Notes under the pieces: generated by a model | Told to the model about the DNA's origin: nothing | The model's input: only the letters and a program-made list of their open reading frames with translations | Database searches by the model: none | Made by a program: the position numbers and the translations under genes | Sequence record: NC_042116.1 | Reading direction: 5' to 3' (one strand) | Length of the DNA: 64,000 nucleotides | Part shown: in pieces, positions 2,816 through 61,258 of the stretch | Position numbering within the stretch: the first letter of the stretch is position 1 | Layout: every line of letters begins with the position of its first letter

Positions 2816-2844
2816 TGGAACAGGCCATAATTTTATGGTATAAT
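2816..2844 (+). promoter_or_regulatory. Hybrid promoter A (TGGAAC-N17-TATAAT, extended TG)
   Basis: TGGAAC 2816-2821, TGG-TATAAT 2836-2844; same geometry at four other sites. Confidence 0.8.
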
Positions 2845-2878
2845 ATATATAATTAAAAAATACATGGAGTGTATAATT

Positions 2879-3109
2879 ATGAGTAATGAAGTTGAATTTA
2901 ACAGTGATGTTGTTGGCCCACAATTAGAATTCATTGATATTATCAATGCTACAAAAATCATGGAAGCCGCGATTGAACGTAAGGCATTTTCAATTAAAGA
3001 ATTAGGAGAAGTTGCCCCTATTGTAGCACGTTTCCAAGATTTTTCACAAGCAATTCTTGAAGAACAATCTAATTCTCCTGAGATTAAATCAGAAGGAGTT
3101 GCAGAATGA
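2879..3109 (+). CDS. Hypothetical small acidic protein
   Basis: ORF after promoter A; GGAG 2866-2869 favours ATG 2879. Confidence 0.65.
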   Translation: MSNEVEFNSDVVGPQLEFIDIINATKIMEAAIERKAFSIKELGEVAPIVARFQDFSQAILEEQSNSPEIKSEGVAE

Positions 3110-3753
3110 GTATTATTAGACATTGTGGAGTAGTTCGCAGTACTGGATCTCGTGTGTTTGTTGTTTGGCGTCAACTTGAGAATGATTCACGCCATTGTTT
3201 AGTGATTTATCGTGATTCATTACCAGAAGCTTATGTAACTAAAGTATCTGATTTAGTACTTAATCAAGGACAAAGCTCAATTGAACTTTGGGATGTTATT
3301 GATAAAATTGGTACACTTGAAGGTGCTAATATGTTAACCGTTTTACATAAAATGGGTTATATTCGTAAGCAAAGTACTTTAGATATTGATATGCATGTTG
3401 GTGGTAATAATAAAATTCCTTTGAATATTTTAAATGATGAAATTAATTCTGCACCAGAAATGGTTGCTGGAACTGTAAAAGATTTCAATCCATTTAAATC
3501 TCAAAATGTTCAATATCCAGAACAAAATACAGTAGTAACTCATCTATTAGATGATGCAAATAAGTATCAGCAATTAGCTAATGAAAGCTTTGAGCGTGCT
3601 TATAATTTAGATCCAAGTTTACGTCCTCAATCAGTTACTGGTGAAAATAAAGATGATGATTTAATTCATCTAAACATCGATCCTTCAATGTCACAAGCTA
3701 AAGCAATTGAGTTAGTTAAAAAGGCATTAAAGGAACATAAAGATGCAAAATAA
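3106..3753 (+). CDS. Hypothetical phage protein
   Basis: 215-aa ORF with ATGA overlap to the previous stop, in a co-oriented operon. Confidence 0.75.
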   Translation: MSIIRHCGVVRSTGSRVFVVWRQLENDSRHCLVIYRDSLPEAYVTKVSDLVLNQGQSSIELWDVIDKIGTLEGANMLTVLHKMGYIRKQSTLDIDMHVGGNNKIPLNILNDEINSAPEMVAGTVKDFNPFKSQNVQYPEQNTVVTHLLDDANKYQQLANESFERAYNLDPSLRPQSVTGENKDDDLIHLNIDPSMSQAKAIELVKKALKEHKDAK

Positions 3754-4051
3754 AATCACTAGGGAACAAATAATCAATTTGATTATTGAGGAACGCTTAA
3801 AACAAATGAGCAATCCAAATACCTTAGCTGACCATCTTAAAACCAAGAATGATTGGACAGGTTTAGCTGGATATTACTTATTTGAAAGTGCATCTAGACC
3901 TGATAAACATGTTTCTTTTGATGAATTTAGACTATCATTAATTAAAGCAGCAGCAGTAATACTTGCTGCTTTAGAAACAAGTTTTTCATTAGATGACAAT
4001 GATATTAAAGAATTATTATCCAAATTGGAAGATAAAAATGACACTAACTGA
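3743..4051 (+). CDS. Possible MazG-like all-alpha NTP pyrophosphatase-fold protein
   Basis: EERLKQ...NDW...LIKAAAVILAALE resembles phage MazG-like helical proteins; the acidic EExxE motif is not clear. Confidence 0.4.
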   Translation: MQNKITREQIINLIIEERLKQMSNPNTLADHLKTKNDWTGLAGYYLFESASRPDKHVSFDEFRLSLIKAAAVILAALETSFSLDDNDIKELLSKLEDKNDTN

Positions 4052-4625
4052 TATATCAACTATGTTGGATCAGTTCGAAAATGTATGTTTTAGTGGCGGT
4101 GCAGCAGGAGCTGACCGCCTTTTTGGTTTGTGGGCAGCATCAAATGGACATGAAGAAGTCCATTTTTCATTTAAAGGTCATAAATCACATGTACCACCTG
4201 AAACTGTTTTGGAATTACCAATAGATCTATTAACTAGTACGGAAATTGTACAAAAATTAAAAACAGCTAATAAAACACTAGAAAGAAGTGTACCTAAATT
4301 TGGGTACGTATATTATTTGTTAGCTAGAAATAGTATGCAAATTTATAGTTCTGAACGGTTGTATACAATGGGAATACTAGTTTCTCCCTCACAATTGGAT
4401 GGTGGAACTGCATGGGCTGTTCAAATGTACTTAGATCAAGAATCCGAGAATAAAGAAATATATCATTATGATATAGTTGATAAAAAGATATATTCATATG
4501 ATAATATACTAAAACAATTCATAGAAGTGCAATCTGTACCTAAACCACATGGTAAGTGGACAGGTATTGGATCTCGTAAAGCGACCGAAGATGATATGAT
4601 TTCATTTTCTTCTAAATTTGAGTGA
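4038..4625 (+). CDS. SLOG-superfamily (YspA-like) nucleotide-binding protein
   Basis: N-terminal CFSGGAAGAD, later DGGTAWAV and TGIGSR. Start moved to ATG 4038. Confidence 0.6.
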   Translation: MTLTDISTMLDQFENVCFSGGAAGADRLFGLWAASNGHEEVHFSFKGHKSHVPPETVLELPIDLLTSTEIVQKLKTANKTLERSVPKFGYVYYLLARNSMQIYSSERLYTMGILVSPSQLDGGTAWAVQMYLDQESENKEIYHYDIVDKKIYSYDNILKQFIEVQSVPKPHGKWTGIGSRKATEDDMISFSSKFE

Positions 4626-4969
4626 AAACTATGACTGAATTTGAATGTGAAGAGTTTAGACGTGAAATTTACAATGATGGTTATCAAGATGGTTTGGAAT
4701 GGGGCATTGAACGTGGAAATATTGATGGATACCAAAAAGGTTCTGAAGACACACGTAACGAATTGGAATCCGAACATGAAAACCAACTTGAAAAAGAATA
4801 CAAACATGGATTCAATGATGCAGAATCTACGTATTCAAGAGATATAGAAAATATACAATATAATATGGAACAAACTATACATTCGTTAAATTCTAAAATA
4901 TTAGATCTGAAACGAACTATATACAATCTAAGGAAAGAAAATGCAGCAATTACTAGATCTATACAATAA
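4622..4969 (+). CDS. Hypothetical protein with GxxxG (FliH-like) repeats and coiled coil
   Basis: YNDGYQDGLEWGIERGNIDGYQKG; GTGA overlap with the previous gene. Confidence 0.6.
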   Translation: MKTMTEFECEEFRREIYNDGYQDGLEWGIERGNIDGYQKGSEDTRNELESEHENQLEKEYKHGFNDAESTYSRDIENIQYNMEQTIHSLNSKILDLKRTIYNLRKENAAITRSIQ

Positions 4970-5879
4970 AGTTCTTGAATTTGGCGAACTTAGTACTGAT
5001 AGAACCGGTGTTGGTACAATAAAATTAATTTGTCAAACAATGAGATTTAATCTACAAGACGGTTTCCCTGCACCAACAACAAAACGATTAGCATGGAATG
5101 CAATGCTATCAGAGTTGATTTGGTTTATTGAAGGTTCACATGACGAACGTAGATTGTGTGAAATTTTATACGAAACTCGTGATGAATCTAAAAAAACTAT
5201 TTGGACTGCAAACTATCTAAATCAAGGGGTTTCATTGGGATATACTGACGGTGAACTTGGTCCAGTTTATGGTAAACAATGGCGGGAATGGATTGATATT
5301 CAATGTGAACAAAATATTTATGGTCATGATCCTTTAACTTATTTAAATTCTGGTTATGAGCAGATAGGTTATGATGATAAAAGTGATTATTACTTTTATA
5401 AAAGAACTATTGACCAGCTTTCAGTACTTATTGATGGATTAAAGAATGAACCGGATAGTCGTAGACATATTTTAACTTCATGGAACGTAGGTGAATTAGA
5501 TAAGATGTCATTAGCCCCATGTCATGCCTTTTCTCAATTTTTTGTAATAGATGGAAAGCTATCTTGTTCACTATATCAACGTAGTGCTGATTTATTTTTG
5601 GGAGTCCCATTTAATATTGCATCGTATTCTTTGTTAACACATATGTTAGCACAAGTTTGTGGATTAGATGTTGGTGAATTTATTTGGATGGGTGGTGATG
5701 TTCATATCTATCAAAACCACATCGACCAAGTAAAAGAGCAATTACAACGTACCCCACGCGAATTACCTACACTATGGATGGATACCAGTATTACTAATAT
5801 TGAAGATTTTAAAATGGATTCGGTTAGATTGGAAGGATATAATCCAGATGGTGTAATTAAAGCACCTATGGCAGTATGA
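4941..5879 (+). CDS. thyA: Thymidylate synthase
   Basis: DRTGVGT, LGPVYGKQWR, LAPCH catalytic Cys, YQRSADLFLGVPFNIASY, GDVHIYQNH. Confidence 0.97.
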   Translation: MQQLLDLYNKVLEFGELSTDRTGVGTIKLICQTMRFNLQDGFPAPTTKRLAWNAMLSELIWFIEGSHDERRLCEILYETRDESKKTIWTANYLNQGVSLGYTDGELGPVYGKQWREWIDIQCEQNIYGHDPLTYLNSGYEQIGYDDKSDYYFYKRTIDQLSVLIDGLKNEPDSRRHILTSWNVGELDKMSLAPCHAFSQFFVIDGKLSCSLYQRSADLFLGVPFNIASYSLLTHMLAQVCGLDVGEFIWMGGDVHIYQNHIDQVKEQLQRTPRELPTLWMDTSITNIEDFKMDSVRLEGYNPDGVIKAPMAV

Positions 5880-5884
5880 TAATG

Positions 5885-5911
5885 AAAAAGGAGCCATTGG
5901 CTCCTTTTTTT
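5885..5911. terminator. Bidirectional terminator at a convergent junction
   Basis: AAAAAGGAGCC-ATT-GGCTCCTTTTTTT. Confidence 0.8.
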
Positions 5912-7910: not shown

Positions 7911-7941
7911 TAAAATGTCCTCAGATAATGGTTATATTAAC

Positions 7942-7949
7942 TATTTATT
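7942..7949 (-). promoter_or_regulatory. T4-late-like promoter AATAAATA
   Basis: 32 nt upstream of the 7910 start. Confidence 0.6.
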
Positions 7950-7967
7950 CAGTACTTTCAAAAACAA

Positions 7968-7990: not shown

Positions 7991-8005
7991 ATTTTTATTA
8001 ATAAA

Positions 8006-8644: not shown

Positions 8645-8655
8645 TTTATCTCCTA

Positions 8656-22461: not shown

Positions 22462-22463
22462 TT

Positions 22464-22492
22464 TGGAACAAACAAAAAAAATCTGCTATAAT
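22464..22492 (+). promoter_or_regulatory. Hybrid promoter B (TGGAAC-N17-TATAAT)
   Basis: TGGAAC 22464-22469, TGC-TATAAT 22484-22492; upstream of clpA. Confidence 0.8.
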
Positions 22493-44469: not shown

Positions 44470-44784
44470 TTAAGAAATATTTCTAGAACCATTTAACCAA
44501 TTTTGCACACGCTGTAATGTTGGTATTAAAATTGTTGTCCCACTTTTAAAATCATAAATTGGATCAACTAAAAGATTAGGGTTTAAAAGTGCAAATACAT
44601 AATATAAGCGTTCATTACCATATAAATTTTTAGCTAATCTCCAAGGTTGTTCATCATACTGATTCGGAATTGTATATTCAATATCGGAATCAGCCGGATA
44701 TAAAGGTGCAGGTAAATTATACTCTAGATACCATGTTTGTGTAGTTTTAGCATACGGAGAGTACTGACTGTATTTTGATGCCAT
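44470..44784 (-). CDS. Baseplate wedge protein (gp53-like, LysM-like)
   Basis: PWRLAKNLYGNERLYYVFALLNP...IYDFKSG pattern. Confidence 0.7.
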   Translation of the reverse strand: MASKYSQYSPYAKTTQTWYLEYNLPAPLYPADSDIEYTIPNQYDEQPWRLAKNLYGNERLYYVFALLNPNLLVDPIYDFKSGTTILIPTLQRVQNWLNGSRNIS

Positions 44785-45521
44785 TAGATAAATCCTCCTT
44801 TACGTAATAATTCACCACGTTTAAATGCATTCAAATTAAATTTGTTAGTCATATAATCTGGTGTAGGTTGTTGTTCCAGTTGAATAGTGATTGACATTTT
44901 CTGAGGAACCCATACTTCATTTTCTGGATTTACTGTTCCAATATCTCTTATATTTTCAAAGTACTGACGTGTTGTTTTATCAGAAAAGTCAAATCCATCA
45001 ATAGATGAATCAACTGGTACTTGAATATAAGAAACATCATCTGGATAACTAAATGAATATGATTTAACAATAACAGGAATATCATTATATATGTATCTTC
45101 CATAACCACTTAATATTAATATTGGTGGTGGTGCACCAACTACTGCAAAATCAGGATTTTGTGAATTTGCAGCTTGTCGTCCGAAGTCCATCAATGTTAC
45201 TGAACGTAGGAAATGCATACATGCTAATGTATACATTGCTTCCATTGCTGTTCCAGCATAGAAAGTACCTTGTATTGTTATTACAGTATTTGATGTATTT
45301 TTATAATTATTATAGCCACTATTAGTATGTACTGGCTGATCCATTTCGTAATTTACGTTTCGTTGTTCCGAAATAACAGGAGTATAGTTCCATACCATAC
45401 CATTAGTTACACGAAGCATTGATAAAATGGAAGGTTGATGTTGTTGACCAGTACCAAAATCACCATATACATAGTTTGCAGCAGCATCTTTTGGTCTTAA
45501 TCTCATTCTACGATCTATCAT
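44784..45521 (-). CDS. Baseplate tail-tube initiator/cap (gp48/gp54-like)
   Basis: HFLRSVTLMDFG...GAPPPILILSGYG...VIVKSYSFSYPDDV; late-like AATAAATA at 45550-45557. Confidence 0.55.
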   Translation of the reverse strand: MIDRRMRLRPKDAAANYVYGDFGTGQQHQPSILSMLRVTNGMVWNYTPVISEQRNVNYEMDQPVHTNSGYNNYKNTSNTVITIQGTFYAGTAMEAMYTLACMHFLRSVTLMDFGRQAANSQNPDFAVVGAPPPILILSGYGRYIYNDIPVIVKSYSFSYPDDVSYIQVPVDSSIDGFDFSDKTTRQYFENIRDIGTVNPENEVWVPQKMSITIQLEQQPTPDYMTNKFNLNAFKRGELLRKGGFI

Positions 45522-45560
45522 ATACATTCTCCAAGAAAATATTATGAAGTATTTATTAGA

Positions 45561-45589
45561 TGGAACGTTTTAGAAAATTGTGGTATAAT
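45561..45589 (+). promoter_or_regulatory. Hybrid promoter C (TGGAAC-N17-TATAAT)
   Basis: TGGAAC 45561-45566, TGG-TATAAT 45581-45589; upstream of the gp55-47-46 operon. Confidence 0.8.
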
Positions 45590-45636
45590 ATAGAGGTAAA
45601 ACAAGGATCGTTTTATAATAAAACATGGAGATTTTT

Positions 45637-46500
45637 ATGGCAGTTAAACCTAAACGCAAGAAGTATTTGAACAACGCGGATTTGCTACGAGAGATTCATA
45701 TCAGTAAAATGTCATACTGTTGGGTACTAGACGATGCTTACAGTATGTACGATTATATCGTCTTTGACGAGTCCGAAATTACTGAAGAATTAATTGAAAT
45801 TGCATCAGCAGAGCGAATTAAACGTTTAAATTCAAATACGTTAGATATTATTCGTGTGAGTAATGGATTTACTACAAAGAAAGCCAAAGAACATGCAGAA
45901 GAACATGGACTACTTATTAGTACTGTTCCTATTGATGAAGTTGTTATAAGAGTTATTAACAACGAGCATATACCGTTCATTGAAAACACGTTAGTTGAAA
46001 AGAAAGTACGTACAAATTTTGAACCATTTAAACACTATATAGTAGATGATAGTGGTGAATTATATGAAGTAGCACGTTCTCATTGGAAAGGTAATTTAGA
46101 TGAAGGTGATTTTTCATTAACTCATGGAAGAATGACAAATGAACTTGGTAAAATGTTCATTAAACTAGCAGAAGAAATTTCACATAAACCAAACTATCGT
46201 AACTATACATATTTGGATGAAATGATGGGAGATGCTAGAATTCAATTGGTTAAAAATGCATTACTTTTTAATGAAAGTATATTGTATAAGAAAATAAAAC
46301 CAGCAGTTCAACTTAACCCTTTCGCATATTACACCTCATTTGTTAATAATGCATTTCGTTCAGTACTTAATGCTGAAAAAAATGTACGTAACATTCGTGA
46401 TGACCTATTGGAAATTCAAGGGTACAATCCGAGTCATACAAGACAAATTGAAATTGAGATGAAAATGCTAGAAAGGAAGCAAACTAATGGCACTGTTTGA
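45637..46500 (+). CDS. gp55: Late-transcription sigma factor (T4 gp55-like)
   Basis: YLNNADLL, LAEEISHKPNYRNYTYLDEMMGDA, NPFAYYTSFVNNAF; precedes gp47/gp46 as in T4. Confidence 0.8.
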   Translation: MAVKPKRKKYLNNADLLREIHISKMSYCWVLDDAYSMYDYIVFDESEITEELIEIASAERIKRLNSNTLDIIRVSNGFTTKKAKEHAEEHGLLISTVPIDEVVIRVINNEHIPFIENTLVEKKVRTNFEPFKHYIVDDSGELYEVARSHWKGNLDEGDFSLTHGRMTNELGKMFIKLAEEISHKPNYRNYTYLDEMMGDARIQLVKNALLFNESILYKKIKPAVQLNPFAYYTSFVNNAFRSVLNAEKNVRNIRDDLLEIQGYNPSHTRQIEIEMKMLERKQTNGTV

Positions 46501-47521
46501 TAAAGCAATTACATTTACTGATATTCATTTAGGATTAAAAAATAACAGTAAAGAACATAATATTGATTGCGTGAACTTTGTTAAGTTCATGATTGAAGAA
46601 GCAACTAAACGAGATATAAAAATATGTATTTTTATGGGAGATTTTTTTCATAATAGAAGTAATGTTAATATTAATACATTAAATTATGGTTTAGAAATAA
46701 TGACTATACTGAATAATCATTTCGATAAAACATATTTTCTTGTTGGAAACCATGATATGTATCATAAAAATAAACGTGACATAACCAGTATTAATATGGC
46801 ACGTGTATTTGAAAAGATACATTTTATAAACAACATAGAAACCATTGATGATTGTACGTTTATTCCTTTTATGGTTGATGATGAATATCAACAACTACCA
46901 AATTTAAAAAGTAAGTATGTTTTTGGACATTTAGAACTTCCTGGATATCTTTTAAACAAAATGATTGAAATGCCAGATCATGGAAAAGAAACTGAAGAAT
47001 CATTTGGTGGATGTGATTATGTGTTTAGTGGTCATTTTCATAAACGACAAGCAAAAGTAACTACTAAAGGTACAAAAGTACTATACACTGGTAATTGTTT
47101 TCCACATAACTTCTCAGATACATGGGATGACGCACGTGGAGTAATGATACTAGTTCATGGACTTGAACCTGAATTTATTATGTGGCCTAATGCACCACGT
47201 TATAGAACATTTTCATTATCAGAGATGTTATCTGAACCAACATATTATCTTGAAGATAATGTGGTTGCAAAAATACAAATTGATATCCCAATTACAATGG
47301 ATGAAATTAGTTTTATACGAGAAACTTTTTGTAAGCTATATAATATAAGAGAATTCAATATCATACCAAGTAATAAGTCACTACAAAATGACTTTAGTGG
47401 TAATGATATTGCAACTACAACAGAATCAGTTGATGATATTGTTATTTCTCAAATTAAAGAAAACAAATCAAATATAATCGACAATGATTTATTAATACAA
47501 ATTTATTTTTCACTATCATAA
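46487..47521 (+). CDS. gp47: Recombination nuclease subunit (gp47 / Mre11-SbcD-like)
   Basis: Phosphoesterase motifs DIHLG, GDFFH, GNHD, GHLE, GHFH. Confidence 0.92.
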   Translation: MALFDKAITFTDIHLGLKNNSKEHNIDCVNFVKFMIEEATKRDIKICIFMGDFFHNRSNVNINTLNYGLEIMTILNNHFDKTYFLVGNHDMYHKNKRDITSINMARVFEKIHFINNIETIDDCTFIPFMVDDEYQQLPNLKSKYVFGHLELPGYLLNKMIEMPDHGKETEESFGGCDYVFSGHFHKRQAKVTTKGTKVLYTGNCFPHNFSDTWDDARGVMILVHGLEPEFIMWPNAPRYRTFSLSEMLSEPTYYLEDNVVAKIQIDIPITMDEISFIRETFCKLYNIREFNIIPSNKSLQNDFSGNDIATTTESVDDIVISQIKENKSNIIDNDLLIQIYFSLS

Positions 47522-47534
47522 AATGGAGGCAAGA

Positions 47535-49676
47535 ATGCTATCTATAAAACGTATTTCAATGCGTAATTTCTTTTCTTTTGGTAATGCTCCACAAGTTGTG
47601 GATTTAGATAGTACTGACATATCTCTAATTTTAGGTCAAAATAATGATGCTGCACCAGGAGATGATAATTCTGGTCGCAGAAATGGAGTAGGTAAGTCAG
47701 CTATTAACCAAGCAATTGTATTTGGATTGTATGGAAAAAGTATTGGGAATGATATTAAAATTCCAAACTTAGTTAATAAAATTAACTCAAAGAATTGTGA
47801 AGTTATTATTGATTTTGAAAAAGATGGTGTAGAATATAGAATAGAACGTGGGAGATCTCCCACGTTTTTTAATTTCTATCGACTAGATGAGAATAATAAC
47901 GTATCTGATGAATCTCGTGGAGAAAAGAAAGATACACAAGAAGATCTAACCGAAATATTAGGAATATCACAGTTACTATTAGAACATATTGTTATATTGA
48001 ATGCGAGTGTAGAACCATTTTTATCACTTTCACAACAAAAACAACGTGAAATTATAGAAGAACTTCTTGGAATTACACAACTAACAGAAAAAGCAAATCT
48101 ATTAAAAGATATGTACAAAGAAACTAAACGATTAGCAGATCAAGAAAAATTCAAAATTGAAACAATAACTGAATCTAACAAACGTATAGAACAAAGTATA
48201 GAAACTTTACAATTAAGAGCTAATGAATTCGAATCTAAAAAAATAAAAACAATACAAGAATTAAATGAACATTTGGAAGATTTTAAAGATGTAGATTTCG
48301 ACCATTTATTAAAAATTGCAGAAGAAATGGCATCAGCAATTGCACATAATAATTCTCGTAGTAATCTTGAAACTAGAGTAACACAACTAGTGGCTAAGCA
48401 TGAAGAATACTCAAATTCATTACAATCAAAGAAAAATACTTTAATTAACAGTATTAATGAATTAAGTACTTTTAATATTTCATCTGAACTTAAATTGCAT
48501 GAAGATTTAGAATCATGGAATTCATTAAATCAATTATTAAAAGAAACATTGAACACTAAACGATTTAAAGAACAACAATTAAAATCGATTTCTGATAAAA
48601 TTATGTTACAGGAACGTTCATTAATAGCTGAACAACAAAAATTAGATGATATAGCAAATAGTAAATGTCCATTATGTAAAAATTCACTTCAACATGATGA
48701 AAATCATGAAAATATGAAACATAAGTCTGAAAATGAAGTTGAAAAACTACTTTCTACTATAGAAATACTAAAAAATGAACAACAAAGTACACAACTTGAA
48801 ATAAGTTCATTGGAAATTTACGAAATGCCAACTAAACCAGTTACATATTATAGTTCTGTGTCTGAAGCTAAGTTGCATGAACATAAATTAGAGGAACTAA
48901 CTAAGAAAAGTACTGAAGAAGATATTAACATTTATGATGAAGAACTTTTAACTGTATACTCTGAATTAGAAAGTACTGAAATTAAAGATGTTATTGAATG
49001 GTATAGTATTGATGAAGTGAAAGAACTTCAACATTCATATAATTCATACATTTCGTCATTAGAACGTGAATCAAATTCACAAAATCCTTATTTTGACCAA
49101 ATTGAAACACTTAAACATAACTCATTACAGTCAGTTGATTATGATGAATACAACAAATTAACAAAACTTGCTGATCATCAAGATTATTTGACTAAATTAT
49201 TGATGAATAAAGATTCATTTGTTCGTCGCCGCATCATTGAACAAAATATATCATTCTTGAACTCTAGATTGCAGTACTGGATTGATAAATCAGGTTCACA
49301 ACATACGGTTGAATTCCTAAATGACCTAAGTGTAGACATAAACCTAAATGGTCAGTCATATGATTTCAAACAATTATCTCGTGGTGAAAGAACTCGTGTA
49401 ATTCTATCATTGAATTTAGCATTTCGTGACACATATGAGTCATTGTACCAAAATATTAACATTATGTTTGTTGATGAATTACTAGACAATGGTCTAGATA
49501 GTGGTGGTATAGAAAGTGCATGGCATATGTTACAAGATTTGAGTGCAGTTAGAGGAAAAAACATCTTCGTAGTATCACATCGTGAAGAATTAGTCAATAG
49601 AGCTAATTCCATATTACGAGTAGTTAAAGAAGATAGCTTTAGTACTGTAGAGTACTGTGATGTACTTGATTTATAA
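47535..49676 (+). CDS. gp46: Recombination ATPase subunit (gp46 / Rad50-SbcC-like)
   Basis: NGVGKS Walker A, coiled coil with CPLC hook, LSRGE signature, MFVDE Walker B, VVSH. Start after GGAGG. Confidence 0.92.
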   Translation: MLSIKRISMRNFFSFGNAPQVVDLDSTDISLILGQNNDAAPGDDNSGRRNGVGKSAINQAIVFGLYGKSIGNDIKIPNLVNKINSKNCEVIIDFEKDGVEYRIERGRSPTFFNFYRLDENNNVSDESRGEKKDTQEDLTEILGISQLLLEHIVILNASVEPFLSLSQQKQREIIEELLGITQLTEKANLLKDMYKETKRLADQEKFKIETITESNKRIEQSIETLQLRANEFESKKIKTIQELNEHLEDFKDVDFDHLLKIAEEMASAIAHNNSRSNLETRVTQLVAKHEEYSNSLQSKKNTLINSINELSTFNISSELKLHEDLESWNSLNQLLKETLNTKRFKEQQLKSISDKIMLQERSLIAEQQKLDDIANSKCPLCKNSLQHDENHENMKHKSENEVEKLLSTIEILKNEQQSTQLEISSLEIYEMPTKPVTYYSSVSEAKLHEHKLEELTKKSTEEDINIYDEELLTVYSELESTEIKDVIEWYSIDEVKELQHSYNSYISSLERESNSQNPYFDQIETLKHNSLQSVDYDEYNKLTKLADHQDYLTKLLMNKDSFVRRRIIEQNISFLNSRLQYWIDKSGSQHTVEFLNDLSVDINLNGQSYDFKQLSRGERTRVILSLNLAFRDTYESLYQNINIMFVDELLDNGLDSGGIESAWHMLQDLSAVRGKNIFVVSHREELVNRANSILRVVKEDSFSTVEYCDVLDL

Positions 49677-49677
49677 C

Positions 49678-49705
49678 AAAAAGGAGCCATTAGGCTCCTT
49701 TTTTT
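49678..49705. terminator. Bidirectional terminator
   Basis: AAAAAGGAGCC-ATTA-GGCTCCTTTTTTT. Confidence 0.8.
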
Positions 49706-50184
49706 ATTTGTGTCATGTCTAAATCACCAGATTTGATCAGTTTTCTTGCTTGATTCGCTCTCTTGGCTGTGTTAGACTCTGGTACTACATTAAATGATTC
49801 TAAAATAGAACATTGTTGAGCAGAGGGCAATGATTTGAACTTTCTAACATCAACAGTTAATGCAGTATGGTGTATAACTTGTTCATCTTCTGGTATATTA
49901 TTATTTTTTTCTAAGTAATCAGCCAATTTTCTTAATACTTCATGAATAGGCTTGTCGGTTAAATGCCCCAAACAGCGTTTAAATGAGTTTACAACTCGAC
50001 CTTCCCACCCGTTAACTTCATTTTGTAATACTTCACGGCAATGCTGATTGTCGGCATGAAGATGGTCTAAAACAGGTTTTGTTATAGGAATACCAATAAT
50101 AGGATCTATACCTTTTTGTTTTTTTAACAATTCGTTGCGATATACTGCTGCTTCTTTTGAATTTTTTAATCTTTGTCGTTTCAT
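49690..50184 (-). CDS. Recombination endonuclease VII (gp49-like)
   Basis: QKGIDPI...VLDHLH...CREVL...NGWEG...LADYLE. Start MKRQR (50184) with GAGGT. Confidence 0.75.
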   Translation of the reverse strand: MKRQRLKNSKEAAVYRNELLKKQKGIDPIIGIPITKPVLDHLHADNQHCREVLQNEVNGWEGRVVNSFKRCLGHLTDKPIHEVLRKLADYLEKNNNIPEDEQVIHHTALTVDVRKFKSLPSAQQCSILESFNVVPESNTAKRANQARKLIKSGDLDMTQIKKGA

Positions 50185-50226
50185 ATATACCTCTAAAGTC
50201 TTTATATAATTGTATTTAACGAAATA

Positions 50227-50255
50227 TGGAACAGATAAAAATAATTTGGTATAAT
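50227..50255 (+). promoter_or_regulatory. Hybrid promoter D (TGGAAC-N17-TATAAT)
   Basis: TGGAAC 50227-50232, TGG-TATAAT 50247-50255; points into an ORF-free region. Confidence 0.8.
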
Positions 50256-50261
50256 AAGATA

Positions 50262-50761
50262 GTAAAACCCTGTTTGGCAATACATATATGTATTGACAGT
50301 TAATAATCCTGATCTAGTCGAAAAGTAGACAGCAGATGAGAAGTTCAAACAGTTCGTTGTGCAAAAGAAACCCGTTAGAAGTACGTGCAGTCAATCAAAT
50401 GAGACATAAGACACCGAGATCACGGCAATGCGGCACATTAAAGAAGTACACTAGGCAAATAGTACTTCCTCGATAGACATATAAGGATCGCACCTTACAA
50501 AGTAGCTAAGGGAGTTTTTCTGAATAAGAAAATTGCGATTGATTTATATACAATATAGATCCGTCAAAAATTCAGAAGAATAAGTATTAAGATTGATTGT
50601 ATAGTCTTAATATTAGTGTGGTAAGCCCACGACCGTTACTATATGAACAGTGATAGAGAGAAACAGAGTAACCCGCTTTCGTTCTAGTTATAGAAATTCA
50701 CTATACAATTAATCGATGACCATCATCGTCAGAAAATTAATACCTTAACTGGTATTTTTTT
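50262..50761 (+). ncRNA. Candidate ~500-nt structured non-coding RNA (family unknown)
   Basis: No ORF of 60 aa or more; bounded by promoter D and a hairpin plus T-run at 50739-50761; many stems with G-U pairs. Confidence 0.45.
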
Positions 50762-50934
50762 ACGCATTCATTCCCCTGCGGGGGGATGGTATAATCTCAA
50801 CAAATCTCGTCAGTATTATAGTATTGAACATAGAAAGAAATGAATTGAGTTGTTTCAGTACAAACGAAGTGAAGTACAGAACAACGAAAATTCTTTGACA
50901 TTCTTCGAATGTCAAATTCAATTAAGGATAAAAA

Positions 50935-51741
50935 ATGAATATTAATTTAATGAATGGTAATTGTATTGATCTAATGAAGAATATTCCTGATAATTCAATA
51001 AATTTAGTTCTTACAGATCCTCCTTATGGAACAACTGCCTGTTCATGGGATATTGTAATTCCATTTGAAGATATGTGGAATGAATTGAATAGAATAATAG
51101 CACCATGCGGTTCTATTTGCTTATTTGGTTCAGAACCATTTAGTTCTTTATTGCGAGTAAGTAATATGAATGCATTTAAATATGATTGGATATGGTCTAA
51201 AAATAAAGGAACTGGTCATTTAAATGCTAAAAAAATGCCTATGAAATATCATGAAATTGTTTCAGTATTCTCTAATACTCCAATAACATACTATCCTCAA
51301 ATGACTGAAGGGCATAATCCTATGAATTATGCAAAAAATAAGCAAAATAATATAAATTCAAGTCATGGAAGTGTTGTAAATAATGCAGGAAGTACCTTAC
51401 GAAATCCAAGATCTATACTTGAATATAAAACCGTCAATAATGATGGAAGTACCGATGGTGGTAGATTTCACCCATCACAGAAACCAGTATCATTATTGGA
51501 ATATTTTATAGAAACTTATACTAAAGAAAATGATACAGTATTAGATTTTACAATGGGTAGTGGTAGTACTGGAATTGCAAGTGTAAACTTGGGAAGAAAT
51601 TTTATTGGTATTGAAATGGACGAAAATTATTTTAAAATAGCAACTGACCGCATTAATAATGCAATAGATATTAAAAGTAGTAATACTGTGGATTGTGATG
51701 ACAAAAAATCAACTGATGAACCTGATTTTTTTGAATGGTAA
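50935..51741 (+). CDS. Beta-class DNA amino-methyltransferase (probably N6-adenine)
   Basis: Motif IV DPPY precedes motif I LDFTMGSGSTG; HPSQKPVSLLEYFI. Confidence 0.9.
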   Translation: MNINLMNGNCIDLMKNIPDNSINLVLTDPPYGTTACSWDIVIPFEDMWNELNRIIAPCGSICLFGSEPFSSLLRVSNMNAFKYDWIWSKNKGTGHLNAKKMPMKYHEIVSVFSNTPITYYPQMTEGHNPMNYAKNKQNNINSSHGSVVNNAGSTLRNPRSILEYKTVNNDGSTDGGRFHPSQKPVSLLEYFIETYTKENDTVLDFTMGSGSTGIASVNLGRNFIGIEMDENYFKIATDRINNAIDIKSSNTVDCDDKKSTDEPDFFEW

Positions 51742-51767
51742 AAAAAGCCGCTAAAAGCGGCTTTTTT
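51741..51767. terminator. Bidirectional terminator
   Basis: AAAAAAGCCGC-TAAAA-GCGGCTTTTTT. Confidence 0.85.
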
Positions 51768-51771
51768 GTTA

Positions 51772-51948
51772 TTATTTTTTGTTTTCACGTTTGATCTTTT
51801 TATTATATTGCTTCACCATCAAATCTTTGTCATTGACTGGCATATTCAATAGCATTTCATATGAAGTATTAGGTATATGAACTGCTACTTCCATTAAAGA
51901 GTTTTTAATTTCTTCACAATTGAACCGCAAATCAGATATTTCCTTCAT
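51772..51948 (-). CDS. Small gp51-like hub assembly / tail chaperone ORF (58 aa, absent from the ORF track)
   Basis: MKEISDLRFNCEEIKNSLMEVAVHIPNTSYEMLLNMPVNDKDLMVKQYNKKIKRENKK; TAATG overlap with the gp26-like stop; frame open back to a slippery site. Confidence 0.7.
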   Translation of the reverse strand: MKEISDLRFNCEEIKNSLMEVAVHIPNTSYEMLLNMPVNDKDLMVKQYNKKIKRENKK

Positions 51949-52823
51949 TACTTCGTCTGGTTCTGAGATGAGAAGCTTGATACGAAAAAACTGCTTGGAT
52001 CAAATTGAAGATTTTCTAATTTCCATTCATGTCCACATTTAGAACATCCCACATCCATTTCATGAGTTACTCCAACATTATTAATATAATCAGATTTTTC
52101 ACGAATTTGTTTTAAAATAAATGCTGGTTGTTTTCCTAACCAATCGTTAATAAATTCTCTTTCAGTAACTACAATTTGGTCTACAGTTTCAATAGATTCA
52201 ATATTTGCAACTATCATATCAAAACTTAATTGAGTCATACTTTCAAATACTGAAGTAAACTGTTTAATTTTATCATCATCAGATAAATCAGCTCCTTCCA
52301 ATAATTGAGCTTTCTTTTGCTCTTGAAACATTTTAAGCCCAAACTCTGAATGTTCTTTCCATGTATGAGGCTTAAATTTCAACATTAATCCACCAACATC
52401 TTCAAGTACTAACGTAGGTTGTTCTTCTATAAGTTCAGCACTATCAATTAAGTACTGCAAATTCCTTTCAAATGCCCCATGATGATCACATTCTGGACAA
52501 TTTACTTCTATTTGATATTCTGTTTCTTTTGTGGCTAGTTTAATTCCTATTAAAAGTAATTCAACATCAGGAACAAACAATTCACGAGCATTTGCTATAT
52601 TTGGTACACAATTCTGAATAACATTAACTACTGCTTCACCATTCATAAGTGCATCAGGATTGTTAAACATCAATTCATCTCGTGCCGACCGTGCACAAAT
52701 ACCACATTCTACTGTATTATTAACTAACACACCAGCAGGGTATTTTATTACATCATTACTTACTAATTTTGTATATAAAGTTTCTACTTTAGTATACTTT
52801 GATAAAGGGTTCATTTGATTCAT
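51948..52823 (-). CDS. Baseplate hub assembly protein (gp26-like)
   Basis: NPLSKY, ARDELMFNNPDALMNGEA, DVELLLIGIKLAT, CPEC and CSKC, FDPSSFF; late-like CATAAATA at 52869-52876. Confidence 0.75.
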   Translation of the reverse strand: MNQMNPLSKYTKVETLYTKLVSNDVIKYPAGVLVNNTVECGICARSARDELMFNNPDALMNGEAVVNVIQNCVPNIANARELFVPDVELLLIGIKLATKETEYQIEVNCPECDHHGAFERNLQYLIDSAELIEEQPTLVLEDVGGLMLKFKPHTWKEHSEFGLKMFQEQKKAQLLEGADLSDDDKIKQFTSVFESMTQLSFDMIVANIESIETVDQIVVTEREFINDWLGKQPAFILKQIREKSDYINNVGVTHEMDVGCSKCGHEWKLENLQFDPSSFFVSSFSSQNQTK

Positions 52824-56786: not shown

Positions 56787-56841
56787 GGTTCATAAATAAT
56801 GTTGATTCGTTCAATGAACGATTGAATAATAAGGATAGGTT

Positions 56842-57075
56842 ATGTTAGATGAAATTTTTGAAGCTAAAGATGACTCTATGTACGACCCTGAAGATGATCA
56901 GACAGTATATAAGTTGACTGACACTCGGAAACCTAAATTGACATTACAAATTCTCAATAACTTAAGAAAGTATAGAGAATTTAAAAAGAATGAGGCTGCT
57001 AAGCGTGATGCAATTGTTGCTATAGTATATGCACAATCTTCTGGTGATGATCAAGCTGGTGGTGGAATGATGTAA
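56842..57075 (+). CDS. Small head-module protein
   Basis: DTRKPKLTLQILNNLRK; between portal and core genes; late-like CATAAATA at 56791-56798. Confidence 0.65.
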   Translation: MLDEIFEAKDDSMYDPEDDQTVYKLTDTRKPKLTLQILNNLRKYREFKKNEAAKRDAIVAIVYAQSSGDDQAGGGMM

Positions 57076-57183
57076 TTATTAATGAAAAGTACTGTTTTTA
57101 AGCTTTTTTGAAAATGGTATTTTTATTAATAATAAATAATGACATACCAAAATAAAATTTTGTATATCTGTTTGGAGGATATA

Positions 57184-58023: not shown

Positions 58024-58045
58024 TAATATATGAAGGAGATCATTT

Positions 58046-58675
58046 ATGAGTATGCTTAGGGAATGGTCTTCATTCAATGATTCTAAAATAATACTAGAGT
58101 ATAAAGAGGATCAACTAACTGGACGTAAGAATTGCTATCTTAAAGGGATAGCAATTCAAGCTGATCGTAGAAACTTAAACGAACGAGTTTATCCTTTTGC
58201 TGAGATTGCTAGAGCAGTTAATAATATGGCAGAAAGAATTTCTAAAGGTGAAAGCATTTTATGTGAATGTGATCATCCAGAAACATTGACCGTAAACTTA
58301 GATAGAGTTGTTGGTATGATTACTAGTGTATGGATGGAAGGTGCTAATGGTATGGCTACTATTATGCTTCTTGATACAACATTAGGAAAAGATATCAGAA
58401 CTATGATTGAAAGTGGTGTTAAGTTAGGTGTTAGCTCTCGCGGTTCAGGTAATGTTGACCACAATGGTGTGGTATCTGAATTTGAAATAGTAACAATTGA
58501 TATTGTAGCACAACCAAGTGCTCCAGATGCATATCCACAAGCGGTATTTGAATCTCTCAATAATAAGTACGGTGCACCTATGACTGGCACAAACCGTGTG
58601 TTTGAGTCATCTAATAGTTCTTATAATAAAGTTGATGATGAAATTCACCAATTTTTTAAGAATTTAAAAGGTTAA
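58046..58675 (+). CDS. gp21: Prohead protease (T4 gp21-like)
   Basis: RNLNERVYP, ECDHP, GVSSRGSG, DIVAQPSAPDAYP. Confidence 0.92.
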   Translation: MSMLREWSSFNDSKIILEYKEDQLTGRKNCYLKGIAIQADRRNLNERVYPFAEIARAVNNMAERISKGESILCECDHPETLTVNLDRVVGMITSVWMEGANGMATIMLLDTTLGKDIRTMIESGVKLGVSSRGSGNVDHNGVVSEFEIVTIDIVAQPSAPDAYPQAVFESLNNKYGAPMTGTNRVFESSNSSYNKVDDEIHQFFKNLKG

Positions 58676-58686
58676 TAAAATAAAAT

Positions 58687-58694
58687 TATAAATA
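58687..58694 (+). promoter_or_regulatory. T4-late promoter TATAAATA (perfect)
   Basis: Upstream of the scaffold gene. Confidence 0.7.
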
Positions 58695-58744
58695 TCTGTA
58701 TATCAAGAGTGCAGATATTATCAGTACTTTAAAGGAGAAAACAA

Positions 58745-59869
58745 ATGTCAAAATTGGATAAGTTTCTAAACGAATCATCTCTTTCTGACGAAGCTAAAAA
58801 GCTAATTCAGGAAGCATGGAATGAAGAAAAAGCTAATGTAGCTGCTGAAATGCGTGAAGAAATGAAAAGTCGTTACCAAGAAGACTTAGCACGTTTAACT
58901 GAAGGATTAGACAAAATGATGGCTGAAGTAATCAGCGAACAAATGTCTGATGTATATGCTGAAAAGCGTAAGTTAGTTGAAGACCGTGTTAAACTTCGTA
59001 AAACATTGGGTAATTTTTCAGATTTCGCAAACACAGTACTAGCTGAAGAAGTTAAATCAATGCGTCAAGAACGCACACATCTAAATGAAAGTCTTAATAA
59101 ATTCATGGGATTCAGTAATCATATCCTAGCAGAAGAACTTAAAGATTTCCATGAAGAAAAACGTCAACTAGTTGAATCTCGTGTAAAACTAATTGCAGAA
59201 GGAAGTAAGCAAATTGCGGAAGCACGTGCAAACTTCATTAAACGTACTGCTGAAAGTGCAGCAACATATATTGCTGAAACTACAGAACGAAATTTAACTG
59301 TACTTAAGGGTGAACTAGTCGAAGCTAAACAAAATATGTTTGGTCGTAAAATTTTTGAAGCTTTTGCTAATGAATTCTACAGTAAGCAATATAACGAAAG
59401 TTCTATTCTACGTGAATTAAATGAATCAATCAAGTCAAAAGAAAATGAAGTTATGGTTTCAAATGTTGCTTTAAAAGAAGCAAAAGATAAAGCAGATGCT
59501 GCTGAACGTAAAGTTCGAATCATGGAAGATAAACATGCACGAATTGCAATCATCGCTGAATTAACAAAACCACTTACTGCTCAACAAAAACAAATTATGG
59601 AATCATTACTTTCAGTAACTCCAACCGAGAAACTAAAAGAAGATTTCACTAAGTACCATAAGTCTGTACTTAAAGGTACTGTAAATGAATCTGCTGCAAA
59701 TCATAGCCGTCCAGCAGTTAATACTAAGGCTAAAAATACTTTGACGGAAAGTAAAATTGTTACTGGAAACCGTGAAAGTAATTTCATTAAAGACGCAGAA
59801 CTTGATGCTGAAGACTTGGATTTCTTAGATGAAATCTCACGTTATGCAGGAATTAAGAAAAAACGTTAA
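58745..59869 (+). CDS. gp22: Prohead scaffold (T4 gp22-like)
   Basis: Coiled-coil Glu/Lys/Ala-rich, between protease and capsid; FGRKIFEAF. Confidence 0.75.
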   Translation: MSKLDKFLNESSLSDEAKKLIQEAWNEEKANVAAEMREEMKSRYQEDLARLTEGLDKMMAEVISEQMSDVYAEKRKLVEDRVKLRKTLGNFSDFANTVLAEEVKSMRQERTHLNESLNKFMGFSNHILAEELKDFHEEKRQLVESRVKLIAEGSKQIAEARANFIKRTAESAATYIAETTERNLTVLKGELVEAKQNMFGRKIFEAFANEFYSKQYNESSILRELNESIKSKENEVMVSNVALKEAKDKADAAERKVRIMEDKHARIAIIAELTKPLTAQQKQIMESLLSVTPTEKLKEDFTKYHKSVLKGTVNESAANHSRPAVNTKAKNTLTESKIVTGNRESNFIKDAELDAEDLDFLDEISRYAGIKKKR

Positions 59870-59946
59870 TTATTAAATGCTAATTTTTCTGTAAGATAAA
59901 TAAAAGCATACAGAAAAGCAAAAAATATCTTTTTAAGGAGATTATA

Positions 59947-61122
59947 ATGTCACAACTATTAACTGAATCTAAATGGGCTGCTGTAAAGGATAAGCTTGTT
60001 GAAGGTCTAAATGGTAATCGTAAAACTGTAATGGAAGCAGTTCTAGATAACCAACGTAAAGTAATGTTACGTGAAAGTGCAACTGCTGGTGCAACATCTG
60101 CTGGTAACATTGCAACACTAAACAAAGTAATTCTTCCAATTATTCGTCGTGTTATGCCAACCGTTATTGCTAACGAAATCATTGGTGTTCAACCTATGAC
60201 TGGTCCAGTTGGACAAATTCATACACTACGTGTACAATATGCTGATAATGCTCCAGGTGTTATTGCTGGTGAAGAAGCTCTATCTCCATACAAGATTGCA
60301 AAATCTTATACTGGTGAGATTAATTCTGATAATACCGCACCACGTGCCGCTCCAACTTCTCAACTAGAAGGTGTAATGGGTCGTCGTGTTAACATCCGTA
60401 TTCTACGTGAAACCGTAGAAGCACAATCTCGTCGTCTATCTGCTCGTTGGACTGTTGAATCTGCACAAGATGCTCAAGCACAACACGGTATTGATGTAGA
60501 AGCTGAATTGATGGCTGCTATTGCACAAGAAATTACTACTGAAATTGACCAAGAACTATTAGCTCGTCTACGTGCACTTCCAGGTGCGGCTGCTGTTGTT
60601 TATGACCAATCTAAAGTAACTGGTGTTGCTACCTTCGTAGGTGACGAACATGCTGCTTTGGCAACTCTAATCAACCGTCAAGCAAACGAAGTTGCTCGTC
60701 GTACCAAACGTGGTGCAGCGAATTGGGCTGTTGTTTCACCAACTGCTCTAACCATTCTACAGTCTGCAACTACTTCTAGTTTTGCACGTACTACTGAAGG
60801 GACTTTCGAAGCTCCAACTAACGTTAAATTCGTTGGTGTATTGAACTCAACTATGCGTGTATATGTAGATACCTATGCTGATGACAGTACTGATGTACTA
60901 ATCGGTTATAAAGGTAACCAAGAAACTGATGCTGGTGCATTCTATTGCCCATACATCCCATTGATGGCTTCTGGTACTGTAATGGACCCTAACACTGGTG
61001 AGCTAGTAACTAGCTTCTTAACTCGTTATGGTTATGTACAGTTAACAGATAGTACTTCATCTCTAGGTAACGCTGCTGACTACTACAGCAAAATTGCTAT
61101 CCGCAACGTAACCTTCATGTAA
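59947..61122 (+). CDS. gp23: Major capsid protein (T4 gp23-like)
   Basis: IGVQPMTGPVGQIHTLR, AQHGIDVEAEL, EITTEIDQE, FYCPYIPL, TRYG; late-like GATAAATA at 59895-59902. Confidence 0.96.
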   Translation: MSQLLTESKWAAVKDKLVEGLNGNRKTVMEAVLDNQRKVMLRESATAGATSAGNIATLNKVILPIIRRVMPTVIANEIIGVQPMTGPVGQIHTLRVQYADNAPGVIAGEEALSPYKIAKSYTGEINSDNTAPRAAPTSQLEGVMGRRVNIRILRETVEAQSRRLSARWTVESAQDAQAQHGIDVEAELMAAIAQEITTEIDQELLARLRALPGAAAVVYDQSKVTGVATFVGDEHAALATLINRQANEVARRTKRGAANWAVVSPTALTILQSATTSSFARTTEGTFEAPTNVKFVGVLNSTMRVYVDTYADDSTDVLIGYKGNQETDAGAFYCPYIPLMASGTVMDPNTGELVTSFLTRYGYVQLTDSTSSLGNAADYYSKIAIRNVTFM

Positions 61123-61166
61123 TTGAAGACCTATTTTAGATTAATTAATCTGAAAGTTAATAAAAG

Positions 61167-61190
61167 AAAAGGACGCTTAGGCGTCCTTTT
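61167..61190 (+). terminator. Terminator after the capsid gene
   Basis: AAAAGGACGC-TTAG-GCGTCCTTTT. Confidence 0.85.
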
Positions 61191-61229
61191 CGCATTTCTA
61201 ATATCTATAAAGTAAATATCAAAGTAGAA

Positions 61230-61258
61230 TGGAACGTTTTATATAATTATGGTATAAT
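61230..61258 (+). promoter_or_regulatory. Hybrid promoter E (TGGAAC-N17-TATAAT)
   Basis: TGGAAC 61230-61235, TGG-TATAAT 61250-61258. Confidence 0.8.

Follow-up and report, generated by a model that had tools for sequence, protein, structure and literature searches.

The DNA examined here (the window, 64,000 nucleotides (nt) of sequence record NC_042116.1) matches bases 124001-188000 of Yersinia phage fHe-Yen9-04, a Rak2-like jumbo phage of the genus Eneladusvirus (354,378 bp), with 100% identity. It contains five copies of a promoter-like element, TGGAAC-N17-TATAAT, which belong to a set of about 38 sites in the 354-kb genome with the form TG(A/G)AAC(A/G)-N13-TGnTATAAT (class 2). The analysis supports class 2 as a genuine, non-chance promoter class, one that differs from both the TTGACA promoters and the late NATAAATA promoters. 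Phage lineages differ in the word that stands in the -35 position, which suggests a phage-encoded reader, and sequence comparisons suggest that this reader is g498, a sigma-70-family protein encoded outside the window. That g498 reads class 2 within a three-sigma cascade is the explanation to which we lean, with little better than even confidence. The relatives of fHe-Yen9-04, all Rak2-like jumbo myoviruses, include Serratia phage BF, the Erwinia pEa_SNUABM phages, Pectobacterium CBB, Cronobacter GAP32, Xanthomonas XbC2, Salmonella 7t3, Escherichia coli 121Q, PBECO4, and Sharanji, and Klebsiella RaK2.

An extended -10 promoter class with a TGRAAC word

A pattern scan of the window returned exactly five matches to TGGAAC-N17-TATAAT, all on the + strand, where 0.07 were expected on average, and none of 100 dinucleotide-preserving shuffles reached five. 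Relaxing the spacer to 16-18 nt yielded no additional TGGAAC/TATAAT site, indicating that the geometry is rigid. The TATAAT is directly abutted by TGn in all five (TGG in four, TGC in one), and no TTGACA was found when the five sequences were read directly. All five 29-mers are fully intergenic in the deposited annotation, although intergenic DNA makes up only 4.3% of the window (chance probability about 1.5e-7). The sites, listed with g237, the first gene behind one of them, are:

2816..2844, + strand: class-2 promoter, TGGAACA with extended -10 TGGTATAAT; predicted start A2851; between g209 and g210
22464..22492, + strand: class-2 promoter, TGGAACA ... TGCTATAAT; predicted start G22499; before g228, a ClpA-like ATPase
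45561..45589, + strand: class-2 promoter, TGGAACG ... TGGTATAAT; predicted start G45596; before g237 (gp55-like), g238 (gp47), and g239 (gp46)
45637..46500, + strand: g237, gp55-like late sigma (record annotation)
50227..50255, + strand: class-2 promoter, TGGAACA ... TGGTATAAT; predicted start G50262; drives no open reading frame (ORF), structured RNA downstream
61230..61258, + strand: class-2 promoter, TGGAACG ... TGGTATAAT; predicted start G61265; between the major capsid gene and g251 (hypothetical)

The original prediction had described these as five plus-strand, intergenic, extended -10 sites lacking TTGACA, and both the scan and the annotation confirmed this. The units that it placed behind them (a thyA-type operon, clpA, gp55-gp47-gp46, a non-coding region and methyltransferase gene, and a post-capsid insert) also match the annotation. 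Bare TGGAAC is itself over-represented 2.5-fold in the window (70 copies versus 27.9 in shuffles); it lies mostly within ORFs, and its minus-strand copies fall in minus-strand gene blocks. This excess is probably a codon or dipeptide effect unconnected to promoters. Because the bare hexamer is frequent and mainly in ORFs, only the composite motif is informative, and the composite, with every copy intergenic, is not equally frequent inside ORFs.

In the whole genome, TGGAAC-N17-TATAAT occurs 12 times, always on the + strand. The broader TGRAAY-N17-TATAAT gives 41 matches, 39 of them on the + strand; 37 carry TGn, a few more are one base off in the -10, and the class-2 sites among the 41 are all on the + strand. 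The register of the upstream word was examined by conditioning solely on TGnTATAAT, which has 94 copies in the whole genome. TGRAAY stands exactly 14 nt upstream in 37 of the 94 (22 TGAAAC, 12 TGGAAC, two TGGAAT, and one TGAAAT), making TGGAAC the minority allele beside TGAAAC. TTGACA or TTGACT occupies the identical register in five, with a few more off by one base, and the remainder look random.

A logo of 38 class-2 sites revealed several features that the search had not forced: a purine at the seventh position of the word, an A-tract in the spacer, a T at -17 in 37 of 38 sites (giving TRTG), an ATA that follows the -10, and, in 35 of 38, a purine at +7, which is the likely start. TGn precedes a TATAAT-like hexamer in 38 of 38, as in sigma-70 extended -10 promoters. 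The consensus reads aaAaA-nn-TG(A/G)AAC(A/G)-nnnn-AAAAAA-tT-r-TG(G)-TATAAT-ATA, with the purine start 7 nt past the -10. About 36 of the 38 sites are intergenic or touch only a stop codon, as judged by a manual check against the annotation. The genes downstream serve nucleotide metabolism and replication (ssb, topoisomerase II) or encode the gp55-like late sigma, and class 2 also precedes at least eight transfer RNA (tRNA) genes or clusters and several ORF-free stretches. One TGAAAC copy, serving g208, lies 74 nt 5′ of the window start. The fHe-Yen9-04 record has no annotated promoters. TTGAC-type promoters cluster at 240-354 kb and 0-20 kb of the genome.

Some arrangements within the class are worth recording. 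A tandem pair precedes ssb (genome positions 201561 and 201649). The sites in the tRNA region lie at 284550, 291061, 292478, 305577, 305760, 309831, 313524, and 321932; many class-2 sites stand 30-50 nt before tRNA genes or clusters (Leu, Arg, suppressor, Asn, Pro, Met), and two are found about 290 and 470 nt upstream of tRNA-Glu.

Structural genes were described as carrying NATAAATA instead, and a survey of the window agrees. The motif has 23 copies on both strands; 21 precede a gene start by 32-145 nt (19 by 32-70 nt), and the genes behind these upstream-placed copies are nearly all structural. No gene start in the window has both NATAAATA and a class-2 site at promoter distance. Only g210 has both motifs, with its NATAAATA 102 nt upstream, past an intervening terminator. 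The two classes are linked through g237, which lies behind the class-2 promoter at 45561. The gp55-like identity of g237 rests on the record annotation and on synteny with gp47 and gp46; a Pfam scan of g237 returned no domain.

Class 2 is already known in silico from CBB and GAP32, and no reader was proposed there. Buttimer et al. (2017) applied MEME to the 100 bp 5′ of each CBB ORF and obtained three motifs: 18 RpoD-like promoters, mostly in the early region; 18 “divergent RpoD-like promoters” (Promoter 1), with a classic -10 and TGAAACG replacing TTGACA, of which 11 precede DNA-synthesis genes and one precedes a gp55-like sigma; and an ATAAATA late motif (PMC5259590). Table S6 of that study lists 29-mers of the same geometry, TG(A/G)AA(C/T) followed by 14 nt and TGnTATAAT, including TGGAAC and TGGAAT alleles; a sigma-70-family gene is located in the CBB early region, and a statement in the same paper attributes the motif to GAP32 (PMC5259590). 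The suggestion that the class was undescribed must therefore be withdrawn, as the 29-nt geometry, including the gp55 promoter TGGAACGTTTTTTAAAATTGTGGTATAAT, is present in Table S6 (PMC5259590). The window is 77% identical to CBB DNA over 44500-52000, and four of its five sites have positional orthologues in CBB, as judged by map position and spacer similarity (gp55, Porf_244; ClpA, Porf_235; g210, Porf_218; post-capsid, Porf_258). Promoter 1 shares with class 2 both its geometry and its downstream gene classes (DNA synthesis, gp55-like sigma). The CBB description is a MEME prediction made on ORF upstreams only, which is why the 50227 site and the tRNA promoters are missing from its list; fHe-Yen9-04 adds the tRNA and structured-RNA promoters, and the TGGAAC allele is commoner in it (12 of about 38) than in CBB. 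No published assignment or test of a reader was found in the literature on this phage group, nor was anything relevant found on TGGAAC as a phage promoter word. The RaK2 genome paper does not mention promoters or sigma, and the Sharanji paper, the fEgEco12 paper, and a 2026 jumbo-phage review assume a sigma role for phage-specific promoters and report no test.

Lineage-specific words and the sigma candidate g498

Conservation of the motif in related phages was checked by taking every TGnTAYAAT in the examined loci and recording the hexamer 13-15 nt upstream for each lineage. The counts are given below, together with the sequence of the corresponding region-4.2 helix of the phage sigma:

fHe-Yen9-04, 354 kb, helix SKATLSRRY: TGRAAC 35, TGRGAY 0, TTGAAC 0, TTGACN 10
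BF, CBB, and GAP32, 63 kb, helix SKATLSRRY: TGRAAC 3, TGRGAY 0, TTGAAC 0, TTGACN 2
Four metagenome genomes (sigmas 70% identical), 84 kb, helix SKATLSRRY: TGRAAC 4, TGRGAY 0, TTGAAC 0, TTGACN 6
7t3 and two relatives, 108 kb, helix SRTSLHRCY: TGRAAC 0, TGRGAY 6, TTGAAC 0, TTGACN 17
Sharanji, 87 kb, helix SRSSIHRKY: TGRAAC 0, TGRGAY 6, TTGAAC 0, TTGACN 5
RaK2, 41 kb, helix VRGTLHYKF: TGRAAC 0, TGRGAY 0, TTGAAC 5, TTGACN 1

The class is kept in the relatives and its word shifts with the lineage, from TGRAAC to TGRGAC or TTGAAC. The totals are 42 TGRAAC, 12 TGRGAY, and five TTGAAC sites, with no cross-occurrence between lineages, and the host-type TTGACN promoters present in every lineage serve as an internal control. 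The gp55 promoter illustrates the shift at positional orthologues: its word is TGGAACG in fHe-Yen9-04 and TGGGACA in Sharanji and 7t3. Among the matches listed in an exact IMG/VR scan for TGAAAC-N14-TGGTATAAT, the multi-hit contigs were 355-371 kb genomes with an SKATLSRRY-type sigma and one further contig, a 94-kb fragment from the same sample.

A host-type promoter embedded in a terminator, GGTTGACTTCGGTCAGCC(C)TTTT-TGyTATAAT, is nearly letter-identical in all lineages. Written in full it is GGTTGAC-TTCG-GTCAGCC(C)TTTT-TGyTATAAT, with the -35 within the terminator hairpin, and copies lie at 333574 and 342123 of the genome and in pieces of Sharanji (L010, ~29440 and ~40054), RaK2 (L012, ~39878), and CBB (L022, ~13003). 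Given this conservation, the GGTTGAC hairpin element looks like a combined terminator and promoter module; it, too, served as an internal control.

The strong conservation of the -35 word within each genome implies that something reads it, and its restriction to a phage lineage is most simply explained by a phage-encoded reader. If host sigma-70 or another host factor were the reader, a common word would be predicted on related hosts; the words differ. These comparisons suggest that the reader is encoded by the phage. A phage activator or modified sigma had been predicted to read TGGAAC; the phage-encoded reader is supported by the lineage-specific word, and an activator of the MotA type, for which no homologue was found, is not.

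The host sigma-70 holoenzyme alone could nevertheless be considered. Class-2 sites would then be extended -10 promoters of high strength that fire as soon as infection begins, and TGRAAC a phage “flavour” of a weak -35 or of spacer context, comparable to the GTTTAC flavour of T4 early promoters. The TRTG context makes TGnTATAAT close to an ideal extended -10, in the tRNA region some copies are interspersed with early-type promoters, the RaK2 word TTGAAC, with its 17-nt spacer, agrees with TTGACA at four of six positions, and TGGGACA holds GACA after a one-base shift. TGAAAC, however, agrees with TTGACA at only two to three of six positions in any register, and canonical TTGAC promoters persist in the same genomes, where they form a class of their own and are distributed differently along the map. 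About 10 bits of information are conserved in a word that varies among lineages, which would be hard to attribute to one host protein; the hosts of these phages share a near-identical sigma-70 region 4. We consider this explanation quite unlikely. An alternative parsing of the element, TTGAAA with an 18-nt spacer, does not hold: TG is preceded by A in 20 of the 38 sites and by T in 14, and the invariant C falls outside the hexamer.

The candidate reader, g498, is a sigma-70-family protein of 330 residues encoded at 332070-333062 of the genome, 208 kb beyond the window start. It has the Pfam domains Sigma70_r2 and r3, and among solved structures it matches SigA, RpoD, and RpoS best, with the HMMER local alignment spanning residues 68-290; Foldseek with the g498 AlphaFold model returned the same sigmas. 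The model places C-terminal helices at 285-291 and 304-324, where the helix-turn-helix of region 4 would sit. FSTYAT..IRQ is kept in region 2.3/2.4, as is the equivalent of H455 in region 3.0. In a MAFFT alignment with E. coli RpoD, residues R584, E585, R586, R588, and Q589 of region 4.2 correspond to K, A, T, S, and R; the region-4.2 alignment of the phage sigma with RpoD is also recorded with R584 retained and E585, R586, R588, and Q589 substituted (the two accounts differ at R584). This helix tracks the DNA word: SKATLSRRY accompanies TGRAAC, SRTSLHRCY and SRSSIHRKY accompany TGRGAY, and VRGTLHYKF accompanies TTGAAC. Full-length homologues of g498 were found nowhere outside this jumbo-phage group, within which identity ranges from 87% to 29%. 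A host-type promoter, cTTGCACta-N-TGTTATAAT (cTTGCAC-N17-TGTTATAAT), lies 5′ of g497-g498 and is kept in all close relatives; together with the early-type location of the gene, it fits early expression of g498. These features suggest that g498 is the reader of class 2. Three promoter classes and three sigmas would permit a one-to-one assignment, and a phage sigma would explain both the exact -35 register and the diverged, lineage-specific helix of region 4.

The domain content of g498 also bears on a reader of the extracytoplasmic function (ECF) type, either host sigmaE or a phage ECF sigma, recognizing GGAAC. GGAAC is the -35 core of sigmaE, TGAAAC is the -35 of B. subtilis sigmaW, and ECF -35 elements typically contain an “AAC” core. 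The -10 of class 2, on the other hand, is TATAAT with a TG extension and not of the ECF type, most copies have TGAAAC rather than GGAAC, and sister lineages, although their hosts are related, have TGGGAC or TTGAAC as the word. The sole phage sigma-70-family gene found has region 3 and best matches group 1/2 sigmas. The analogy with sigmaE drawn in the original prediction is accordingly weak, given the dominant TGAAAC, the group-1 extended -10, and region 3 in the phage sigma, and an ECF reader is regarded as highly improbable.

A more substantial alternative is sigma appropriation, in which host sigma-70 reads TGnTATAAT and some other phage protein binds TGRAAC at -35, with or without a remodeller of region 4, and recruits the polymerase; g498 would then serve another role. 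The logic has a precedent in T4, where it controls the same genes (55, 47, 46, and td). A switch distinct from MotA had been predicted, and this part is supported: neither a MotA box nor TGCTT appears in the 38-site logo, which has TGRAACR at -36 to -30 followed by the A-tract, and the word is lineage-specific. When T4 MotA and AsiA were compared with all six-frame ORFs of the genome, phmmer returned nothing at E<=10 and tblastn only short chance matches, a search that very diverged homologues could escape. With its 17-nt spacer the element occupies precisely the -35 register, the place of sigma region 4, while the MotA box is centred at -30. Appropriation would also leave a conserved early sigma without a promoter class, and no candidate protein was found for it; several hundred small early ORFs lay outside the screen.

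Several observations weigh against g498 as the reader, and some of them fit appropriation. All lineages share a -10 that agrees perfectly with the host consensus; it and its TG extension are invariant and host-like while only the -35 word varies, as appropriation predicts. Sigma-70 can act at an extended -10 promoter that has no -35 element. The phage sigmas differ from sigma-70, and from one another, at region-2 residues that match the sigma-70 contacts to -12, while the -10 stays constant; in the Sharanji and RaK2 sigmas even R436 and Q437 are replaced, which host sigma-70 as reader of the -10 would explain at least equally well. The W433/W434 pair of sigma-70 is absent from g498 (FSTYATTAIRQ). 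No more than three or four independent lineages underlie the correlation of helix and word, and any factor that the phages encode would show the same link to lineage. The region-4 comparison is a MAFFT alignment of very diverged sequence, beyond the end of the HMMER alignment at about residue 290, and the AlphaFold model is modest (mean predicted local distance difference test score, pLDDT, 63; predicted template modelling score, pTM, 0.33) and was used for helical domain order, not contacts. Finally, the PA5oct omics paper, the sole related omics study, reports only TTGAC/TATAATA promoters. On balance, appropriation is judged unlikely, and recognition of class 2 by g498 is retained as the preferred explanation.

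Window sites and a structured RNA family

Two of the window promoters, 2816 and 61230, come right after hairpin-plus-T-run terminators:

2788..2815, + strand: terminator-like hairpin, GGTCACC-ATTAT-GGTGGCC then TTATTCTTTT; read from sequence only
61170..61192, + strand: terminator-like hairpin, AGGACGC-TTAG-GCGTCCT then TTT; between capsid gene g250 and the 61230 promoter; read from sequence

The first hairpin ends the g208-g209 unit directly 5′ of the 2816 promoter, whose own unit, g210-g215, comprises three hypotheticals, a DprA-like gene, a further hypothetical, and thymidylate synthase; its likely positional orthologue in CBB, Porf_218, is TGAAACGTACCAAAATTTTATGGTATAAT. The promoters at 22464 and 45561 lie in divergent spacers that also hold a minus-strand NATAAATA for the adjacent structural gene. 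The 22464 spacer is shared with g227c, for which the minus strand carries AATAAATA, and the CBB counterpart, the ClpA promoter Porf_235, is TGGAACGACCTAAAAAAATGTGCTATAAT (TGGAACGACC...TGCTATAAT). The full 29-mer at 45561, TGGAACGTTTTAGAAAATTGTGGTATAAT, aligns with its positional orthologues in CBB (Porf_244, TGGAACGTTTTTTAAAATTGTGGTATAAT), Sharanji (TGGGACAaaatgctttttggTGCTATAAT), and 7t3 (TGGGACAaactggaaaaatgTGATATAAT). Two blocks in the g237 leader, ACAAGGATCGT at 45600-45612 and ACATGGAG at 45625-45632, are kept in fHe-Yen9-04, Sharanji, and 7t3, while the surrounding spacer has diverged; ACATGGAG includes the ribosome-binding site, and the blocks may constitute a leader element. For the 61230 site the likely CBB orthologue is Porf_258, and the following genes g252 and g253 each have their own NATAAATA. 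In the stretch 61259-61276, the predicted start G61265 interrupts the GGAG annotated as ribosome-binding site of g251, and the leader would be only about 9 nt; translation of g251 is then nearly leaderless, or else the gene start or the transcription start lies elsewhere.

Behind the 50227 promoter lies an ORF-free stretch of about 680 nt, ahead of the Dam methylase gene g241, which holds a structured RNA. The copies of this RNA are:

50262..50830, + strand: structured RNA copy in the window; about 500 nt to a hairpin and T-run at ~50738-50762, then a conserved 3′ block
L001:24495-25010, L007:22382-22990, L008:46704-47230, and L002:43327-43403 (fragment): copies in other pieces of the genome
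L011:25780-26300 and L013:25759-26275: examples of copies in relatives

The conserved block begins at the predicted start base, G50262, which gives indirect support for class 2 firing where predicted. The paralogues in the genome, at 24.5, 260.3, and 334.7 kb with a fragment at 93.3 kb, each lie directly behind a class-2 promoter. Copies occur in all sampled lineages except RaK2, with 68-75% nucleotide identity, while the sigmas of the same lineages are 35-45% identical. A blastn search of a phage collection located the RNA at 259 places in 62 records, three to five per genome, all in Rak2-like jumbo phages, where it is either unannotated or covered by tiny “hypothetical” ORFs. In 7t3 (L013:25649-26587 and L014:16089-16617), opposite-strand runs of 31-73-residue “hypothetical” ORFs coincide with RNA copies and are probably annotation artefacts.

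An alignment of 14 sequences revealed invariant blocks between hairpins with compensatory changes. RNAalifold predicted 73 pairs from it, 37 of them with double changes. In a 103-pair structure, 93.1% of cells pair, compared to 35-47% when partners were slid by one to three columns; both sides change in 51 pairs, compared to 10-18 in the slid controls; and the covariation score is 0.333, compared to 0.06-0.10 in controls, with none of 500 shuffles reaching the observed values. The window has no Rfam 15 match at gathering scores, and 50200-50960 none at E<=1; the PA5oct ncRNA001/002 region gave no nhmmer match to the family. A literature search based on words of its sequence likewise returned nothing. 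There is some, albeit weak, support for the family being previously undescribed, and it may be a more novel object than the promoter class.

The 3′ block of the window copy includes a CCCC(N3)GGGGGG hairpin (50773-50786). At 50773-50795 the conserved sequence GGGGGGATGAAAAT is changed to GGGGGGATGGTATAAT, creating a second extended -10 without TGRAAC upstream, 140 nt before g241, which may be the methylase gene's own promoter.

Proposed cascade and comparison with known systems

In the proposed mechanism, host RNA polymerase with sigma-70 would transcribe the TTGAC-type early promoters at the genome ends, including that of g497-g498. The g498 protein, with regions 2, 3, and 4, would then join the host core enzyme; its region 2/3 would read the extended -10, and its diverged region-4.2 helix would read TGRAAC rather than TTGACA. 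Activation of class 2 would provide functions of nucleotide metabolism and replication, most of the phage tRNAs, the structured RNA family, and the gp55-like late sigma, which would in turn read NATAAATA ahead of the structural genes, so that three sigmas act overall. A “middle” timing of class 2 is plausible from its gene content and from the gp55-like gene downstream. Extended to the whole Rak2-like group, the cascade would have a group-1-like phage sigma that keeps the extended -10 code, with region 4 retargeted to a drifting private -35 word (TGRAAC, TGRGAC, or TTGAAC), and a regulon that includes the multi-copy RNA of about 500 nt; this wider proposal is tentative, and our confidence in it falls somewhat short of even.

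If it is true, the five window sites are the visible edge of an uncharacterized system of sigma and promoter co-evolution together with a new large phage RNA, and they represent a natural case in which -35 specificity evolves while the -10 code stays. The general assumption for jumbo phages that encode no RNA polymerase is that sigmas of their own redirect the host enzyme, and for the large Rak2-like group no published link connects a sigma to a promoter. With three variants of the sigma and three -35 words available in nature, a concrete and cheap swap test can be made. The system could, if confirmed, supply orthogonal sigma/promoter pairs for synthetic biology, and more than 60 sequenced jumbo phages could be annotated with a temporal map.

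A functional parallel is found in the T4 middle promoters, which likewise combine a host-type -10 with a non-host element in place of the -35 and serve 55/47/46, td-type, and replication genes; class 2 would, like them, act between early and late transcription. They differ in the element itself: the MotA box, (a/t)(a/t)(a/t)TGCTTtA, has its centre at about -30 and is separated from the -10 by 11-13 bp, whereas class 2 has TGRAAC at -35 with a 17-nt spacer. fHe-Yen9-04 also encodes a full sigma-70-family gene, and T4 does not.

In the cascade of Bacillus phage SPO1, gp28 and then gp33/34 redirect the host core enzyme to phage promoters. The gp36 proteins of phages phiEco32 and 7-11 are described as early phage sigma-70-family proteins that replace the host sigma and redirect the host core to middle or late promoters specific to the phage (PMC8948821). 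fHe-Yen9-04 resembles these phages in possessing a sigma-70-family gene, and the pairing of g498 with class 2 is a proposed one. In SPO1, phiEco32, and 7-11 both promoter elements depart from the host consensus, whereas class 2 departs in the -35 word only. ECF promoters share an “AAC”-containing -35 with class 2 and differ in the type of -10 and in sigma architecture, region 3 being present in the phage protein. The sigma-70 extended -10 promoters have the same TGnTATAAT; the classical ones need no conserved -35, whereas class 2 has a near-invariant, lineage-specific word of 6-7 nt at a fixed distance.

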